Numbered from the stretch's first letter, positions 7,922-47,341 are shown. The stretch is 64,000 nt of DNA from Salpingoeca rosetta (GCA_033442325.1 JAWQFM010000004.1:1357917-1421916); one strand, 5' to 3'. The notes: generated by a model from the sequence alone, not told the origin. Numbers and translations are program-made.

Positions 7922-8030
7922 CCCCTCGCTCAAGTTGGCTCACCTTGTTGGCGTGTTCATTCCTTGCTCGCTGTAGGAACATCAGCAGAGAGCATCAAAC
8001 GCTAGGAATCAAGCGCTTTTGTCTGCCATA

Positions 8031-10920
<2,890 letters not shown>

Positions 10921-11078
10921 GCGAGCAGGGAAGCGACCGCACATGGATAAAATAAGTCTATCCACACGACGCACACATGCACAAAGGAGACGTGGCTTCT
11001 TCTTCCATTGACTTTGTTGTTTGCTGCCCAAAAGCGCGAAAACCTTCGAACAAACTTTGCGGACAGCAACGAAGGAAG

Positions 11079-12359
11079 ATGAACAACCCTGGCCTGACGT
11101 TGGTGGTGGTGGCAAGTTGCTCGCTGTTGTTGACGATGATGCCGTTCATCGGCGTTGTTGGAGGGGTGACGCTGAAGGAGGACGGTGCGGGCGCGTTTCA
11201 CATCAACACTAGCGATCCAATGAGCCAGCCCGTGTTCGTGAACGGGATGCAAGTGGATGGGCTGTTCGAGACAATGGACACGCTGTTGCGGGCATTCTCA
11301 ACGCAGCAGAGTACCATCGACGCGCAGCAGAGCACGATCGATGCGCTGCAGAGCACGGCCTTCGCGCAGCAAAGCGCAATTGATGGACTGTGTCGTCGGG
11401 TGGAGCCGAGTGCAAAGACCTTTGGGCAACTTGGCTCGCAGGCTTCAAAATGGGCAGATGGTGTGCTTGGGGGCAATGGTCTGATATACGCCGCGCCGCA
11501 CTTTGCATCCTCCGTGCTTATCATTGATCCCAGCACCAACACCGTCGACACAACCACAATCTCCGGACTTGGGGCAGACGATCGCAAGTGGGCTGGTGGG
11601 GTACTAGCTGACAACGGGCTCGTTTACATGTTTGCTGCTTCCAGGCCAACAATGCTCATCATCGACCCAGACACCAACACCATTGACATCACAAGCATTC
11701 ACTCGCTTGGTTCCGGGCAAAACAAGTGGTTTGGTGGCGTGGTCGCCAGCAACGGCGTCATCTTTGGCATCCCATTGTCTGCGACCTCTGTTCTCATCAT
11801 CGATCCAGAGACCAACACAGCCGACATCACCTCCATGGCTGGTCTCGCTTCCGACTATGACAAGTGGTTCGGCGGTGTGCTGGCAGACAACGGCCTTATC
11901 TACTGCACACCAATCCGTGCAGCCTCTGTCCTCATCATCAATCCACAGTCCATGACCATGGACCTCACCACCATCAGTGGCCTCGGCACGAGCGCCAAGT
12001 GGCTTGCCGGCGTGCTTGCAGGCAACGGACTCATTTACACGATCCCATTTCTTTCGGCATCGACGCTTGTTATTGATCCAGCCACCAACACGACCAGCCA
12101 GGTTCGTGCTGTTTCTCAGTCCTCCATCAGGGACTGGGCGGACGGTGTGCTGGCACCCAACGGCAACGTCGTTGGCATTCCTTTCGACTCCTCATCCGTC
12201 TTCATCATTGATCCAACGACCAACACGATTGATACAACGAGTATCAACGACCTTGGCGGGACAGGCAAATGGTATGGCGCGGTTCTCGGTCCAAACGGCC
12301 TCATCTACGGCATTCCACACTATGCGGAGTCCGTCCTCGTCATCGATCCGGGATGCTGA
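11079..12359 (+). CDS. Intronless predicted secreted protein: signal peptide + short conserved module + Gln-rich coiled coil + 7 x ~46-aa beta-propeller repeats (paralog A)
   Basis: Uninterrupted 426-aa ORF from ATG 11079. Hydrophobic N-terminus, AFHINTSDPMSQPVFVNG module, QQSTIDA heptads, seven KWxGGVLAxNGLIYxxPxxAxSVLIIDP repeats, ends DPGC*. Confidence 0.9.
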   Translation: MNNPGLTLVVVASCSLLLTMMPFIGVVGGVTLKEDGAGAFHINTSDPMSQPVFVNGMQVDGLFETMDTLLRAFSTQQSTIDAQQSTIDALQSTAFAQQSAIDGLCRRVEPSAKTFGQLGSQASKWADGVLGGNGLIYAAPHFASSVLIIDPSTNTVDTTTISGLGADDRKWAGGVLADNGLVYMFAASRPTMLIIDPDTNTIDITSIHSLGSGQNKWFGGVVASNGVIFGIPLSATSVLIIDPETNTADITSMAGLASDYDKWFGGVLADNGLIYCTPIRAASVLIINPQSMTMDLTTISGLGTSAKWLAGVLAGNGLIYTIPFLSASTLVIDPATNTTSQVRAVSQSSIRDWADGVLAPNGNVVGIPFDSSSVFIIDPTTNTIDTTSINDLGGTGKWYGAVLGPNGLIYGIPHYAESVLVIDPGC

Positions 12360-12400
12360 TGTGTGTGTGTGTGCGTGTTTTTGCGTGTATAGGTGTATGG

Positions 12401-12453
<53 letters not shown>

Positions 12454-12697
12454 CTTCTTGGTTGTCCTTGCCCAATCTGTCATTCATCTGATTCCTTAAC
12501 CCTCTCTTAGCGTCAACTTTCGTTCTTTCAACTCTGTGACTGCATCCTGTACGCCTACCACTGTTCATTGGTCCTTGACTTTCACCACCAACTGTCATGT
12601 CACAACAACAACGACAATAGAAGGCGGACACCACAACCAAACCAACCACAAGCCCCCCCCCCCCATGTCGACGTAAACGTCTTCCCGAACGCACGCG

Positions 12698-12794
<97 letters not shown>

Positions 12795-12808
12795 CAAAAC
12801 AAAGCACA

Positions 12809-12843
<35 letters not shown>

Positions 12844-12882
12844 CACACACAACAAAACAAAGCACAACACACACACACACAT

Positions 12883-14139
12883 TCACTGCTCCTGGTCCGC
12901 GTGTGCTGCTGGAGCAAGGGAGAAGGTGTCCTGGCTCACGTGGCGGTTCACCACCCACGTGTATGCGCTGTCAAACGCCGCCGGAAACGCGGTCCGGGCG
13001 TCCACAGCCAGCCCCGCGTAAAGGGGGAAGTACGCTTCCCGCATGCGGCGGTACGCAGCCCACAATACGGACGCGGCACACTCGCGCGATGACGCCAGGA
13101 GGTAGGAGGGCATGCTCAGCTCCATGTGCCGGTGGCGGTCGTCCGCGTGCACAAACTTGCGCTGCACTTCCGTCTTCACGCCGCCCGGGCAGTGCACGGT
13201 GACGCTGACGCCGTGCGCGGCCAGCTCCGGTCGCAGCGTGTCGAAGAACCCGTGCAGGGCGTGCTTGGTGGCTGCGTACCCGGCCTGGAAGGGCGCTGGT
13301 ATCCGCGCGTAGAACGAGCTCACAACCACCACCCGCCCGCGCGTGCGCTTGAGGTGCGGCAGTGCGGCGTGCGTCGCCCGCACGTACCCCCAGTAGTTGA
13401 CCTCCATCAGCCAATGCAGCGCGTCTGTGTTCGGAAGGTCTTCCAGCCGCGACCACGTGCCGGCCGTTCCCGCGTTCAAGATGAGCGTGTCAATGCGGCC
13501 GAGCCGGGCAGCGGCCGTCTCGACGAGCGACATCGCGTCCTCGGGTCGCGTCGCGTCGTACCGCACAATGTGCACCGATGTAGCGCCAGCTCGGCGGCAC
13601 TGCTCTGCAACCTGCTCCAGCCTCTCCATCCGCCGCGCCGCCAGCAGCAGCGCAGCGCCGGCTTCCGCAGCCAACAGCGCCACGTCCTTCCCGATGCCTG
13701 AGGATGCTCCCGTGATCACCACCGCCTGGTTCAGCATGCCCGGCACGACGCCCGCTTTAGTCCAGGCAAGAGCGTCATTGCCGCTCGCGGCGTCGTCAAA
13801 GGCGGAGATGTCGTGGCGTGCTGCAAGCAGCGCCTCCTGCCAGCTCACGTCCACGGAGCGCTGCTGCTGTGCCTGCTGATGCGGTGGGGTGGGGACGTGT
13901 TCCGGGTTGTAGACCTGTAAGCCAGCACGGGCAGCCGCGAGGCACAGCTCCACGACAACGAACCCGGCGTGGTAGGATGCGTCGATGACCAGCGCCGCGG
14001 CCTTGCCCAGGTGAACGGGGATCAGCAGCACGGCTTGCAGAGTTGCGGCCGTGTCCAGTGGGGCCACCTTGTACCCCAGCGTCAGCAGCACCGCCAACAC
14101 CCCCACGCCAACACCCACTCGCCACCAACTCACCACCAT
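12883..14139 (-). CDS. Intronless membrane-anchored short-chain dehydrogenase/reductase (11beta-HSD1/DHRS7-like)
   Basis: 418-aa ORF with VVITGASSGIG (TGxxxGxG), ILNAG, VNYWG, catalytic YAATK and a hydrophobic N-terminus. Confidence 0.9.
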   Translation of the reverse strand: MVVSWWRVGVGVGVLAVLLTLGYKVAPLDTAATLQAVLLIPVHLGKAAALVIDASYHAGFVVVELCLAAARAGLQVYNPEHVPTPPHQQAQQQRSVDVSWQEALLAARHDISAFDDAASGNDALAWTKAGVVPGMLNQAVVITGASSGIGKDVALLAAEAGAALLLAARRMERLEQVAEQCRRAGATSVHIVRYDATRPEDAMSLVETAAARLGRIDTLILNAGTAGTWSRLEDLPNTDALHWLMEVNYWGYVRATHAALPHLKRTRGRVVVVSSFYARIPAPFQAGYAATKHALHGFFDTLRPELAAHGVSVTVHCPGGVKTEVQRKFVHADDRHRHMELSMPSYLLASSRECAASVLWAAYRRMREAYFPLYAGLAVDARTAFPAAFDSAYTWVVNRHVSQDTFSLAPAAHADQEQ

Positions 14140-14240
14140 GTCTTTGCGTTGTTGTCAGTGCTTGCTTGCTTGTGAGAAAAGAAGAGCAAGCAAAAACGCA
14201 ACACAGTCATCAACAACAACATTCAAACGAGCAAGAAAGC

Positions 14241-14284
<44 letters not shown>

Positions 14285-14310
14285 CACACACACAGACACA
14301 CACACACACA

Positions 14311-14367
<57 letters not shown>

Positions 14368-14407
14368 CGCTGATCAACCGACACACCACACCTTGATTCA
14401 CTCTCTG

Positions 14408-17245
<2,838 letters not shown>

Positions 17246-17883
17246 CCGCCACATTGTGTGTCTTGCGTGTGTTTGTGTGTCTTACGTGTGTGCGTGTGAC
17301 TTGTCATGTCTGTTTGCTGTGTTGCTCCATGTCTTCTCCCCTCTCCCTTCAATCTCTTCTCTCGTCTCGTCTCGTCTTCTTCAGCTCGTGCACCATCTGC
17401 AGAAAACCCGTGTCTTGATAAAAATATGCGACTGGTCCACAATTTATTCTTCCACTTGCAAGTGGCAGAAAAAAAGTACACAGAGCACACACAGAGCGAA
17501 CAACCGACAGGCAGACAGTTTGTTTGTGCCAGTTCCAATCCACACATCCACTGCCACCGCTCACCGTAGCCACGCATCCCATACCATCCAATCCAAGCAA
17601 CGCACTGGTGGTACACGACCTTCTCTTCCTTTTCGTGGCTACGCCACGCATTGGTCTCTGTCGTTGTTCCAACAGCACGCTTTCCTCCCGTTTGTCTTCG
17701 TTTCCCGCGCCAGAAGCTTGGCCCCTGTTTCTGTTTCGTGCGTGTCGCGTGCGCTTCTGTTTTGTCGCCGTTCCATCTTTTGGCTTCCTCCTCGCCGTCA
17801 TCTTGCTGGGCAGCGGTTCGGTTCTCAGTGCCCCCACGTTTGTGCAGAGCAACAATTCCTGAGCAGAGGAGCATCATCGCAGC

Positions 17884-18115
17884 ATGCTTCGACCCCACGT
17901 TGTGAGTGCCCATGCTTGTCGACAGTCAATGTGTGTATGTGTGAGTGCGTGTATTGTGTGTGGGCAAGTGAGTGAATGAGTGTGTGTGGGTATAGTGTGT
18001 GTGTGTGTGTGTGAGTGTGTGTGTGTGTGTGAGTGTGTGTGTGTGTGTGTGTGATTGCCTGTCCCTGTGTCTGTGTGCGAGCGTTGTCGTGTGTTATCGA
18101 CTGCCAACGTGTCAG

Positions 18116-43913: not shown

Positions 43914-45200
43914 TCAACATCCCGGATCGATGACGAGAACAGACTCTGAGTAAAATGGGATGGCGTAGACGAGGCCATTGTCAGTGAGCACGCCGCCGTA
44001 CCACTTGGCATCCCCGTTAAGGTTTTGAATTGTCGTCGTGTCGGTGGTGTTTGTGGTTGGATTGAAGATGAAGACTGATGGTGATTTGTATGGGATGCCG
44101 ATGATGTTGCCGTTGGGTGCAAGCACGCCGCCGACCCACTTTCCTGAACCCGTGGAATCGGGCACGGCGAGGGTGTCTGCAGTGTTGGTGGTCGGGTTGA
44201 GGACGAGGGTCGTCGCACTAAAGTATGGGATGCCATAGATAAGGCCGTTGCCTGCAAGCACACCACCATACCACTTGGCGCTTGTATCGAAGCCGCTGAT
44301 GGTGGTGAGGTCCATGGTCATGGACTCTGGATTGATGATGAGGACGGAAGGGGCCGTCGTGGGAATACAGTAGATGAGGCCATTGTCTGCTTGCACACCG
44401 CCAAACCACTTGTCACCCTGGCTGGACAGCCCTGACAGCGTGGTGACGCCGGCTGTATTGGTCTCTGGATCAATGCTCAGCACAGAGGTGGCGAAGTAGG
44501 GTATGCCGAAGATGAGGCCGTTGCTGGCTGCCACGCCACTAAACCACTTGCGTTCACCGTCACCAAGTGAATCGATGCTCGAGGTGTCTGCGGTGTTGGT
44601 GTCTGGGTCGATGATGAGCATCGTCTCCCTATTTGAAGGAAGCATGTAGATGAGGCCGTTGTGTGCCAACACGGCACCAGCCCACTTGTAGCTGTCTGTG
44701 CCAAGTCCGGAGATTGTGGTTGTGTCAACGGTGTTGGTGCTGGGGTCGATGATGAGCACGGACGGGGAGTTGAACGGCGCCGCGTAGATCAGGCCGTTGT
44801 TCGCCAGCACACCTCCAAGCCACTTCACACTCAGTGAGTCAAGCTGCCCAAACGTCGTGGCACTTGGGGTGCACACTTCGCCACGGACACGGTCGATGGT
44901 GTTCTGCTGCGCCTCAATCGCCCTCTGCTGCGCGGAGACAGTAATCTGTAGCGCAGCATTGATGCTCTGCTGCGCCGACACGGTGCTCATCAGCGTGCTG
45001 AGCGTCTCGTGCACATTCACGCCGTTCACAAACACTGGCTGGCTCATTGGATCGCTGGTGTTGATGTGAAACGCGCCCGCATCATCCTCCATCAGCGTCA
45101 CCTCTCCACTGGTGGTGAACGGCATCATCGCCAGCAACACGAAAAGCTGCAGCATCACGTGTGCCTGCAGGCCCCCCATCGCTGTCCTTATCAGCGCCAT
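43914..45200 (-). CDS. Intronless predicted secreted coiled-coil + 7-bladed beta-propeller protein (paralog B)
   Basis: 428-aa ORF with the same architecture and repeat order as 11079..12359; ends DPGC*. Confidence 0.9.
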   Translation of the reverse strand: MALIRTAMGGLQAHVMLQLFVLLAMMPFTTSGEVTLMEDDAGAFHINTSDPMSQPVFVNGVNVHETLSTLMSTVSAQQSINAALQITVSAQQRAIEAQQNTIDRVRGEVCTPSATTFGQLDSLSVKWLGGVLANNGLIYAAPFNSPSVLIIDPSTNTVDTTTISGLGTDSYKWAGAVLAHNGLIYMLPSNRETMLIIDPDTNTADTSSIDSLGDGERKWFSGVAASNGLIFGIPYFATSVLSIDPETNTAGVTTLSGLSSQGDKWFGGVQADNGLIYCIPTTAPSVLIINPESMTMDLTTISGFDTSAKWYGGVLAGNGLIYGIPYFSATTLVLNPTTNTADTLAVPDSTGSGKWVGGVLAPNGNIIGIPYKSPSVFIFNPTTNTTDTTTIQNLNGDAKWYGGVLTDNGLVYAIPFYSESVLVIDPGC

Positions 45201-46057: not shown

Positions 46058-47341
46058 TCAGCATCCCGGGTCAATGACGAGAACAGACTCAGAGGAAGAC
46101 GGAATGCCGTAGATGAGGCCGTTTGGACCGAGCACGCCATCGAACCACTTGTTGTCGCCGGCAAGACCGCTGATGGTTGTTGTATCAGTGACGTTTGTTG
46201 TTGGATCGATGATGAGAACTGAGTGTGATTTGTATGGGATGCCGATGATGTTGCCGTTGGGTGCAAGCACGCCGCCGACCCACTTTCCAGAGCTTGTTTG
46301 CTCGGCCACGACGAGCTCGTCAGTGGCGTTCGTGGCTGGATCGATGACGAGTGCGGTTGCCGATAGCAATGGGATGGTGTAGATGAGCCCGTTGCTGGCA
46401 AGCACGCCACCATACCACTTGGCGTTACTGTCCAGGCCGCTGATGGTGGTGACGTCCATCGTCAGGGACTCGGGATTGATGATGAGGATCGAAGAAGTCG
46501 CACGTGGGATGCAGTAGATGAGGCCGTTGTCTGCTTGCACACCACCGTACCACTTATATTCTTGACTCAACACGCCAGACAGCGTGGTGAGGTCGGCTGT
46601 GTCGGTCTCAGGGTCGATGATCAGCACGGAGGTTGCAGAAGCTGGGATGCCGAAGACGAGGCCGTTGCTAGCCACAACACCACTGTACCACTTGTTGATA
46701 CCAGAGCCGAGCGAATCGATACTTGATGTGTCGACGGTGTTGGTGTCGGGGTCGATGATGAGCATTGTCTCCCTGTGCGAAGGAAACATGTAAATGAGCC
46801 CGTTGTGTGCCAGTACAGCGCCGGCCCATTTGAAGTTGTCGGTTCCCATCCCGGAGATTGTGGTCGTGTCAATGCTATTGGTGCTGGGGTCGATAATGAG
46901 GACAGAAGGGGAGTTGTGCGGGGCGGCATAGACCAAGCCGTTGTTTGTCAGCACCCCGCCAATCCACTTGTACGCAGTTGAGCCGAGCTGGCCAAACGTC
47001 CTTTCATGAACCCTGTGACAAAACGCAGCGTTCAGGGTTTGCTGAGCATCGATTGCGCTCTGCTGTGCATCGATCGTGCTTTGCTGAGCAGCATTGATGC
47101 TCTGCTGTGCCGAAACGGTGCTCATCAGCGTGCTGAGCGTCTCGTGCACGTTCATGCCGTTCACAAACACGGGCTGGCTCATTGGATCGCTCGTGTTGAT
47201 GTGAAACGCGCCCGCATAATCCTCCACCATCGTCACCTCTCCCATAGTGGTAAACGGCATCGAACAGACTGCCACCACCAGCAGCACGGACACCAGCATC
47301 ACACGTGCCTGCAGGCATCCCATCGTTCTCTTTCTCATCAT
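46058..47341 (-). CDS. Intronless predicted secreted coiled-coil + 7-bladed beta-propeller protein (paralog C, tandem with B)
   Basis: 427-aa ORF. Shares HETLSTLMSTVSAQQSINAA and KWVGGVLAPNGNIIGIPYKS exactly with B; ends DPGC*. Confidence 0.9.
   Translation of the reverse strand: MMRKRTMGCLQARVMLVSVLLVVAVCSMPFTTMGEVTMVEDYAGAFHINTSDPMSQPVFVNGMNVHETLSTLMSTVSAQQSINAAQQSTIDAQQSAIDAQQTLNAAFCHRVHERTFGQLGSTAYKWIGGVLTNNGLVYAAPHNSPSVLIIDPSTNSIDTTTISGMGTDNFKWAGAVLAHNGLIYMFPSHRETMLIIDPDTNTVDTSSIDSLGSGINKWYSGVVASNGLVFGIPASATSVLIIDPETDTADLTTLSGVLSQEYKWYGGVQADNGLIYCIPRATSSILIINPESLTMDVTTISGLDSNAKWYGGVLASNGLIYTIPLLSATALVIDPATNATDELVVAEQTSSGKWVGGVLAPNGNIIGIPYKSHSVLIIDPTTNVTDTTTISGLAGDNKWFDGVLGPNGLIYGIPSSSESVLVIDPGC

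Follow-up and report, generated by a model that had tools for sequence, protein, structure and literature searches.

One-faced sequence variability under net purifying selection in a large family of predicted beta-propeller proteins of Salpingoeca rosetta

The DNA analysed was a stretch of 64,000 nucleotides from Salpingoeca rosetta (GCA_033442325.1 JAWQFM010000004.1:1357917-1421916), referred to here as the window, and it contained three related genes, paralogs A, B and C, whose products carry a predicted seven-bladed beta-propeller. About 90-100 intronless S. rosetta genes make up the old family to which paralog A belongs. Variation among the copies was concentrated in the loops of one predicted propeller face, the top face, where the ratio of replacement to synonymous substitution rates (dN/dS, omega) was 3-6 times that of the scaffold and the bottom loops, yet selection was net purifying, and pervasive positive selection was not supported. 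The features of the locus are listed in Table 1.

Table 1. Features of paralog A and positions of its two paralogs in the window (loop tips and loop positions are those of A).
Feature	Position	Strand	Basis and remarks
Open reading frame (ORF) containing paralog A	10977-12359	+	460 aa; from ORF list
Paralog A gene, likeliest extent	11079..12359	+	ATG 11079 (residue M35 of the ORF) to stop 12357-12359; intronless
Hydrophobic N-terminal segment (LTLVVVASCSLLLTMMPFIGVV...)	11094..11165	+	Read from translation; putative signal peptide or type II anchor
N-terminal beta motif (..AGAFHINTSDPMSQPVFVNGM..)	11166..11252	+	Conserved in alignment; short strands in model; entropy 1.22 bits
Coiled-coil stalk, long helix with QQSxID-type repeats, ending at Cys139	11253..11393	+	Model helix 30-76; entropy 2.2 bits
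Seven-bladed YVTN-type beta-propeller	11409..12356	+	AlphaFold2, Foldseek, TIGR02276
Blade 1 D-A loop tip SQAS before KW, hypervariable	11436..11447	+	Family alignment entropy
Blade 1 B-C loop P+1, P+2 (HF)	11499..11504	+	Family alignment entropy
Blade 2 D-A loop tip ADDR	11574..11585	+	Family alignment entropy
Blade 2 B-C loop, two variable positions (AS after A157)	11637..11642	+	Family alignment entropy
Blade 3 D-A loop tip SGQN	11712..11723	+	Family alignment entropy
Blade 3 B-C loop P+1, P+2 (LS)	11775..11780	+	Family alignment entropy
Blade 4 D-A loop tip SDYD	11850..11861	+	Family alignment entropy
Blade 4 B-C loop P+1, P+2 (IR)	11913..11918	+	Codon site tests; includes R314
Blade 5 D-A loop tip GTSA	11985..11996	+	Family alignment entropy
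Blade 5 B-C loop P+1, P+2 (FL)	12048..12053	+	Family alignment entropy
Blade 6 D-A loop tip SSIR	12120..12131	+	Family alignment entropy
Blade 6 B-C loop P+1, P+2 (FD)	12183..12188	+	Family alignment entropy
Blade 7 D-A loop tip GGTG	12255..12266	+	Family alignment entropy
Blade 7 B-C loop P+1, P+2 (HY)	12318..12323	+	Family alignment entropy
Paralog B	43914..45200	-	428 aa; 65% identical to A; tblastn and alignment; Pfam DUF6923 29.8 bits vs 27-bit cut-off
Paralog C	46058..47341	-	427 aa; 65% identical to A; tblastn and alignment; Pfam DUF6923 38.9 bits; TIGR02276 28.5 bits

The interval 11400-12359, singled out in a first-pass annotation made by a model from the sequence alone, corresponds to the C-terminal propeller part of the ORF. 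The start of gene A is most likely the ATG at 11079, because the alignment of the paralogs with A begins at M35 and a neighbouring RNA ends at 11054/55. Gene A is transcribed, with continuous, low and strand-consistent coverage in three stranded RNA-seq runs (reads at >=97% identity; depth about 1-10 in a quarter of each run). The neighbouring RNA is an abundant polyadenylated species of about 200 nucleotides at 10853-11055 (+), with a depth of about 290 vs 1-10 over gene A; it bears non-templated A tails at 11054/11055, and this end lies 24 nucleotides before the likely start codon. It is unrelated to A and may mark the 3' end of a gene upstream or represent a short non-coding RNA, and a search of the interval 10200-11300 gave no credible Rfam match for it, the sole match lying upstream at 10561-10663 and far below the gathering score. 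RNA reads joining 11653 and 12313 (going back 661, with 20 foreign letters between the two sides) were also found over gene A; a rearrangement was rejected as their source, since the reads stem from other paralogs and align to two separate blades of A.

The predicted protein would run from a hydrophobic leader through a conserved N-terminal beta motif and a coiled-coil stalk to a YVTN-type propeller of seven blades with an invariant Cys at its end. The AlphaFold2 model of A residues 64-460, built from an 81-sequence family alignment, had a mean pLDDT (predicted local distance difference test) score of 93 and comprised a short beta motif (model residues 1-29), a long helix of 47 residues (30-76) and then seven four-stranded blades (28 strands), with the N-terminal strand (82-86) forming the outer strand of blade 7 and thus closing the propeller. 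The protein ends in ...DPGC, and its terminal Cys was invariant (81/81 sequences); a staple between Cys139 and Cys460 is predicted. The N-terminal motif was among the more conserved parts of the family (1.2 bits), near the propeller strands and bottom loops. Foldseek matched the model to seven-bladed propellers, with streptogramin B lyase (Vgb) first at an identity of 10-11%, and the match of highest sequence identity (22%, probability 1.0) was the archaeal YVTN S-layer propeller 1l0q; the template modelling (TM) scores for 1l0q and 2z2n were 0.59-0.85, target-normalised. In profile searches, TIGR02276 (cut-off 27.85) was marginally passed by A (29.2 bits) and C (28.5 bits) and gave no match for B, PF21959 DUF6923 (cut-off 27) was passed by C (38.9 bits) and B (29.8 bits), and A passed PF16819 DUF5074 instead (32.8 vs 27.2), so that all Pfam/TIGR matches of the three paralogs were marginal and above the curated cut-offs.

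By the convention for WD40 and other propellers, the top face of an up-and-down four-stranded blade is the side bearing the B-C and D-A connections, and the A-B and C-D connections are on the opposite side. In the model, blade 7 has the start of its strand D and the end of its strand C at the bottom, which would place the stalk junction and the C-terminal Cys on that face and would leave the B-C loops and D-A tips to form a distal top face.

A six-frame search of the genome gave 108 matches, and retrieval of the loci yielded 95 related open frames, at least 86 of them full-length and ending in ...(D)P-G-C-stop. Only 2-3 copies had in-frame stops; the copies with a TAG or TGA, likely pseudogenes, were L020 (G000:C4:1470187-1471377), L061 (G000:C12:113245-114246) and the copy at G000:C23:1180232-1181434. 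Identity to the nearest paralog was mostly 50-80% and exceeded 90% in three pairs only, and the family is therefore old. The exact sequences of the three window proteins were absent from the protein collection searched, and public records thus appear to lack annotation of these intronless genes or to model them otherwise. Their best named database relatives were Salpingoeca rosetta proteins, and many further homologues were bacterial and metagenomic, at 35-55% identity. Among the relatives was the TIR-domain protein PTSG_02868, for which another part of the contig contains a coding sequence with 98-100% identity (L039 / L090, G000:C4:1718090-1720098), identifying the genome as that of S. rosetta; in this protein, a propeller of the same type is carried on a predicted transmembrane-TIR protein. 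Its propeller nests inside the clade of paralog A, sharing 67% identity with A and 73-75% with the closest putatively secreted members. This member points to a propeller head that, at least once, would serve extracellularly in signalling. A literature search found no paper describing this propeller family; a TRPW paper on choanoflagellate WD40 channels was set aside, since it concerns a different, intracellular propeller family.

For the analysis of variability, top-loop sites were taken as those of the B-C loops together with the final 6 residues of each D-A loop, and bottom-loop sites as the A-B and C-D loops. The blade scaffolds were conserved position by position among the paralogs, as the first-pass annotation had stated, and every string quoted there was present in the alignment: the blade 2 scaffold reads YMFAASRPTMLIIDPDTNT, YMFPSHRETMLIIDPDTNT and YMLPSNRETMLIIDPDTNT in the three paralogs, and the blade 4 scaffold LIYC.P....(V/I)LIINP.S.TMD is common to A, B and C. 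The loops at the conserved Pro differed among A (PHF, AAS, PLS, PIR, PFL, PFD, PHY), B (PFN, PSN, PYF, PTT, PYF, PYK, PFY) and C (PHN, PSH, PAS, PRA, PLL, PYK, PSS). The same was true of the tetrads before KW (A SQAS/ADDR/SGQN/SDYD; B SLSV/TDSY/DGER/SQGD; C STAY/TDNF/SGIN/SQEY), all of them as reported earlier. Among A, B and C alone, 60% of top-loop sites were variable vs 18% of bottom-loop sites (Fisher odds ratio (OR) 7.1, p=2e-7).

Per-site entropy over the 81 sequences showed the same register of variability in all seven blades. High entropy was found at the 4-5 residues before the conserved Lys-Trp, at the residue after Trp (W+1), at P+1, P+2 and one position two further on, and at single positions of the xNG and DPxTNT motifs. 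Mean entropy was 2.23 bits in the B-C loops and 2.53 in the D-A tips, 1.09 in the A-B loops and 1.15 in the C-D loops, 0.8-1.6 in the strands, 2.2 in the stalk and 1.2 in the N-terminal motif. Top loops exceeded bottom loops (Mann-Whitney p=1e-12), and 35 of the 48 most variable propeller sites were in top loops (Fisher OR 13-15, p=5e-14). The claim that divergence is concentrated on one propeller face is thereby borne out (OR 13), the face being by topology the predicted D-A/B-C face, distal to the stalk junction. A small number of isolated positions on the bottom face (the x of xNG and of DPxTNT) also vary, as does W+1, and the coiled-coil stalk (2.2 bits) was no less variable than the top loops.

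The propellers of 97 homologues from other organisms, mostly metagenomic or bacterial and including Spirochaetota and Leptospiraceae records, served as a control. Their per-site entropy correlated with that of the S. rosetta family (rho 0.80), and their top loops were more variable than their bottom loops (p=1e-12), with a top/bottom ratio of 1.8 vs 2.1 in S. rosetta. The one-faced variability therefore belongs to the propeller family as a whole, and the pattern alone marks no special immune-like repertoire. This agreement is what would be expected if the B-C and D-A loops were merely the least constrained parts of the fold and drifted near-neutrally without bearing on specificity, and if function resided in conserved parts: the central channel or Lys-Trp ring, the N-terminal motif, the bottom face, or a catalytic role like that of Vgb lyase. 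The presence of an enzyme, streptogramin B lyase, among the best structural matches and a stalk that is just as variable, having no obvious role in specificity, point the same way.

Rates of evolution by site class were estimated in two clades. Clade 1 comprised 27 sequences including A, B and C, and its codon alignment, fitted with GY+F3X4+G4, gave omega 0.225, kappa 2.2 and a tree length of 7.0 substitutions per codon; clade 2, an independent clade of 18 sequences, was used for replication. Site and mixture likelihoods were computed by pruning, with summation over internal states, on a grid of 24 omega x 13 synonymous-rate values, and the code agreed with IQ-TREE to within 0.004 log-likelihood (lnL) units (-18776.628 vs -18776.632). 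Omega in clade 1 was 0.3-0.4 in the top loops (B-C loops and D-A tips), 0.1 in the bottom loops and 0.15 in the strands (0.1-0.15 over all estimates). At the 42 hypervariable positions indicated by the first-pass annotation it was 0.6, significantly below 1 (2dlnL 20-36). In clade 2, the corresponding values were 0.3 for the top loops, 0.4-0.5 for the 42 positions (significantly below 1) and 0.1 for the bottom loops. Pairwise Nei-Gojobori estimates for A, B and C, with dS of about 0.8-1.1 and some classes saturated, served as a rough check only and gave a top-loop omega of 0.23-0.37 where dS was estimable.

Further signs of constraint were found on the variable face. The length of the B-C loops differed from that of A in only 0.7% of sequences, and that of the D-A tips in 20%. 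The P+1 residue was F, Y, W or H in 50% of cases (background 9%), W+1 was aromatic in 39%, and across all blades the Lys and Trp of Lys-Trp were conserved at 82% and 98%, respectively. At the 42 hypervariable positions an average pair of sequences differed at 83%, and 80 distinct signatures were found among 81 sequences. A constrained, maintained and paralog-specific surface, which may serve binding, fits these data better than neutral drift because of the fixed B-C lengths, omega below 1, the aromatic P+1 and W+1 residues and the conserved Lys-Trp. Neutral exposed loops would be expected to show neither such invariant lengths nor such aromatic enrichment, identity to Vgb is just 10-11%, and about 90 intact ORFs, with in-frame stops in so few copies, argue that each copy is maintained; a drifting, least-constrained face with function elsewhere is thus considered unlikely.

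Recombination among the copies had a direct bearing on the tests for positive selection. The trees for blades 1-2, 3-4 and 5-7 had no bipartition in common, and every segment rejected the trees of the other segments and the whole-gene tree (approximately unbiased (AU) test p<=0.007, dlnL 51-117); the assumption of a single tree is therefore wrong. Neighbouring gene pairs, compared at the DNA level, told a similar story. The N-terminal motif plus stalk diverged by 2.1% in L046/L047 (G000:C15:644652-650484), by 0.5% in L064/L070 (G000:C35:478609-484452) and by 0% in L058/L067, and the three propeller segments diverged by 32.7%, 30.2% and 8%, respectively. Near-identical 5' modules with divergent heads point to gene conversion confined to the 5' module, or to head swapping behind a common stalk. 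Mosaic recombination among family copies was thus demonstrated.

The first-pass annotation had proposed diversifying selection on a binding surface, and the corresponding explanation is an arms race, in which the top-face residues of a variable receptor repertoire are driven apart by pervasive diversifying selection, as in the major histocompatibility complex (MHC), the LRRs of plant NLRs and the WD40 repeats of fungal NLRs. In clade 1, a single-tree non-parametric mixture test assigned omega 1.5-3.3 to about 6% of sites (2dlnL 22-24), and 17 of its 22 candidate sites were in top loops and 0 in bottom loops (Fisher p=2e-7). Recombination is a known source of false positives in such tests, and this likelihood ratio test (LRT) was rejected as evidence of positive selection, the segments having significantly different trees. 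With three segment trees the codon likelihood rose by 367 units, and the LRT for omega above 1 dropped to 7.9 (omega 2-4 at about 3% of sites). Omega by class did not change (top loops 0.4, the 42 positions 0.6, bottom loops 0.1). The LRT was 2.0 in clade 2, where no site-wise test was significant and no candidate site was in common with clade 1. Site-wise, 7 sites in clade 1 reached a nominal p<0.05 for omega above 1 (best 0.0037 among 368), and the nominally significant sites, 4-7 in number, were mostly in D-A tips and B-C loops. R314, in the blade 4 B-C loop, was the best single candidate (nominal p 0.0017-0.029) and was lost on correction; after correction for multiple tests no site was significant (best p 0.0017-0.0037 over 316-368 sites). 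Thus the codon alignments of both clades, examined with our own likelihood method, yielded no site with omega above 1 after correction.

Closely related gene pairs also weighed against an arms race. L053/L054 and L036/L043 (98.6-99.5% identity) showed no excess of replacement changes, and in L058/L067 (91% identity) 57% of the replacement differences were in top loops but omega was 0.66. The apparent positive-selection signal is largely a product of recombination between copies. An arms race, for which the size of the family and its one TIR-linked member might also speak, is therefore quite unlikely, since omega at the most variable sites was 0.4-0.6 and significantly below 1 in both clades, no site survived correction, the mixture signal shrank on segment trees and was not replicated, and 27 taxa with 7 substitutions per codon lie in the range where pervasive selection should show. 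What the first-pass annotation had called a variable-receptor-like repertoire stands as to the very large repertoire (at least 86 copies, 80/81 signatures), and its diversifying selection was not upheld. It had named one outcome that would tell against it, variable sites spread evenly over all surface loops with dN/dS <= 1: the sites were not evenly spread, which leaves the proposal standing on that side, and dN/dS was at or below 1, which does not.

The explanation considered probable is that the family forms a set of extracellular stalked heads with a ligand specificity for each paralog, diversified by duplication, divergence and recombination without detectable pervasive positive selection. 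Each head would derive its specificity from the top-face loops around a common Lys-Trp framework and would be displayed on a shared stalk and anchor module. On the predicted distal face, differences accumulate because purifying selection is weaker there, by a factor of 3-6 relative to the scaffold (omega 0.3-0.6 vs 0.1); constraint is still present, as the fixed B-C lengths, omega below 1, aromatic P+1 in half of the copies and a near-invariant Lys-Trp in each blade indicate. The diversity itself would stem from old duplication and divergence plus recombination between copies, with mosaic blades and 5' modules homogenised or heads swapped, and not from any detectable pervasive positive selection. 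From the sequences, a binding-repertoire function of the family is plausible.

Several points weigh against the stalked-head explanation. The one-faced profile occurs also in homologues outside S. rosetta and might reflect the fold in general. The faces were assigned from the AlphaFold2 strand order, DSSP and propeller topology, so that the exposure of residues such as P+1 and Lys-Trp is predicted from topology, and secretion is suggested by the hydrophobic N-terminus alone. In addition, a class of 3-6% of sites at omega of about 2 is compatible with the segment-tree LRT of 7.9 (nominal chi-square(2) p of about 0.02), and a small positively selected class, or episodic selection, may exist.

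Comparison with known systems placed the family nearest to the YVTN propellers (TIGR02276; Methanosarcina S-layer 1l0q) and DUF6923/DUF5074, with which it shares repeats of about 45 residues and the seven-bladed fold. The S. rosetta propeller differs in standing behind a eukaryotic leader, the N-terminal motif and a coiled-coil stalk, in its about 90-100 intronless copies in one genome and in its invariant Gly-Cys end, which was found in only 6 of the 97 foreign homologues. The WD40 propellers of fungal NLRs (HNWD/NWD) likewise make up a large paralogous family whose copies recombine and vary at few positions of each blade on a single face. They show documented positive selection (omega>1) together with concerted intragenic shuffling of near-identical repeats, whereas in S. 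rosetta omega was below 1 and the blades keep blade-specific signatures across paralogs; moreover, the S. rosetta proteins are of a predicted extracellular type and not cytosolic NLRs, and their repeats are not WD40.

As an analogy of design only, the hydrophobic leader, the predicted helix of 47 residues and the predicted C-terminal propeller would correspond to the arrangement of collectins, ficolins and phage tail-fibre or receptor-binding proteins, in which a distal recognition head at the C-terminus is borne by a helical stalk behind an N-terminal module for anchoring or oligomerisation, and heads differ where stalk and anchor modules are shared or exchanged. These proteins have no sequence relationship to the family, and no collagen, CTLD or fibrinogen domain was found in a Pfam search of the paralogs at E<=1. 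Beta-propeller lectins (tachylectin-2, Photorhabdus PLL and the AAL/RSL fucose lectins) carry one repeated site per blade around conserved aromatic residues, and the Lys-Trp flanked by aromatic-rich variable positions may be a comparable per-blade feature; none of these lectins was among the 50 best Foldseek matches in the PDB. As in variable receptors, a large repertoire (108 matches, 86 full-length), variability on one face and recombination were found here, the binding of ligands by that face being assumed, and dN/dS above 1 at the variable sites was not found.

Beyond paralog A, an ORF of 418 aa at 12883-14139 (-), tail-to-tail with A, carries classical short-chain dehydrogenase/reductase motifs (VVITGASSGIGK ... 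YAATKHAL). In the intergenic DNA at 8000-18000 and beyond, microsatellites of the (TG)n/(CA)n and (AAC)n types are dense and long, and they account for many spurious Cys/Val- or His/Thr-rich ORFs in the ORF list.

Taken together, the one-faced variability is real and strong, yet it is no evidence of an arms race: the variable loops are under purifying selection, the signal is largely made by recombination and the same profile is found in bacterial relatives. The mosaic structure, with homogenised stalk modules, divergent heads and blade blocks of different history, is the more informative lead on how the repertoire diversified. Choanoflagellates, which are sister to animals, subsist on bacteria that they recognise and eat; for telling bacteria apart, the family of about 100 secreted or surface putative binding heads, with one on a TIR protein, is a candidate. 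A more far-reaching proposal, doubtful on present data, is that the distal face of about 100 extracellular stalked propellers was diversified by mosaic gene conversion or head swapping together with positive selection at a few loop positions, and that they recognise bacteria (prey, cues or pathogens) or self/non-self, with TIR wiring in at least one member. If true, the family would be a propeller-based counterpart of the LRR-based innate immune repertoires, in the closest living relatives of animals.

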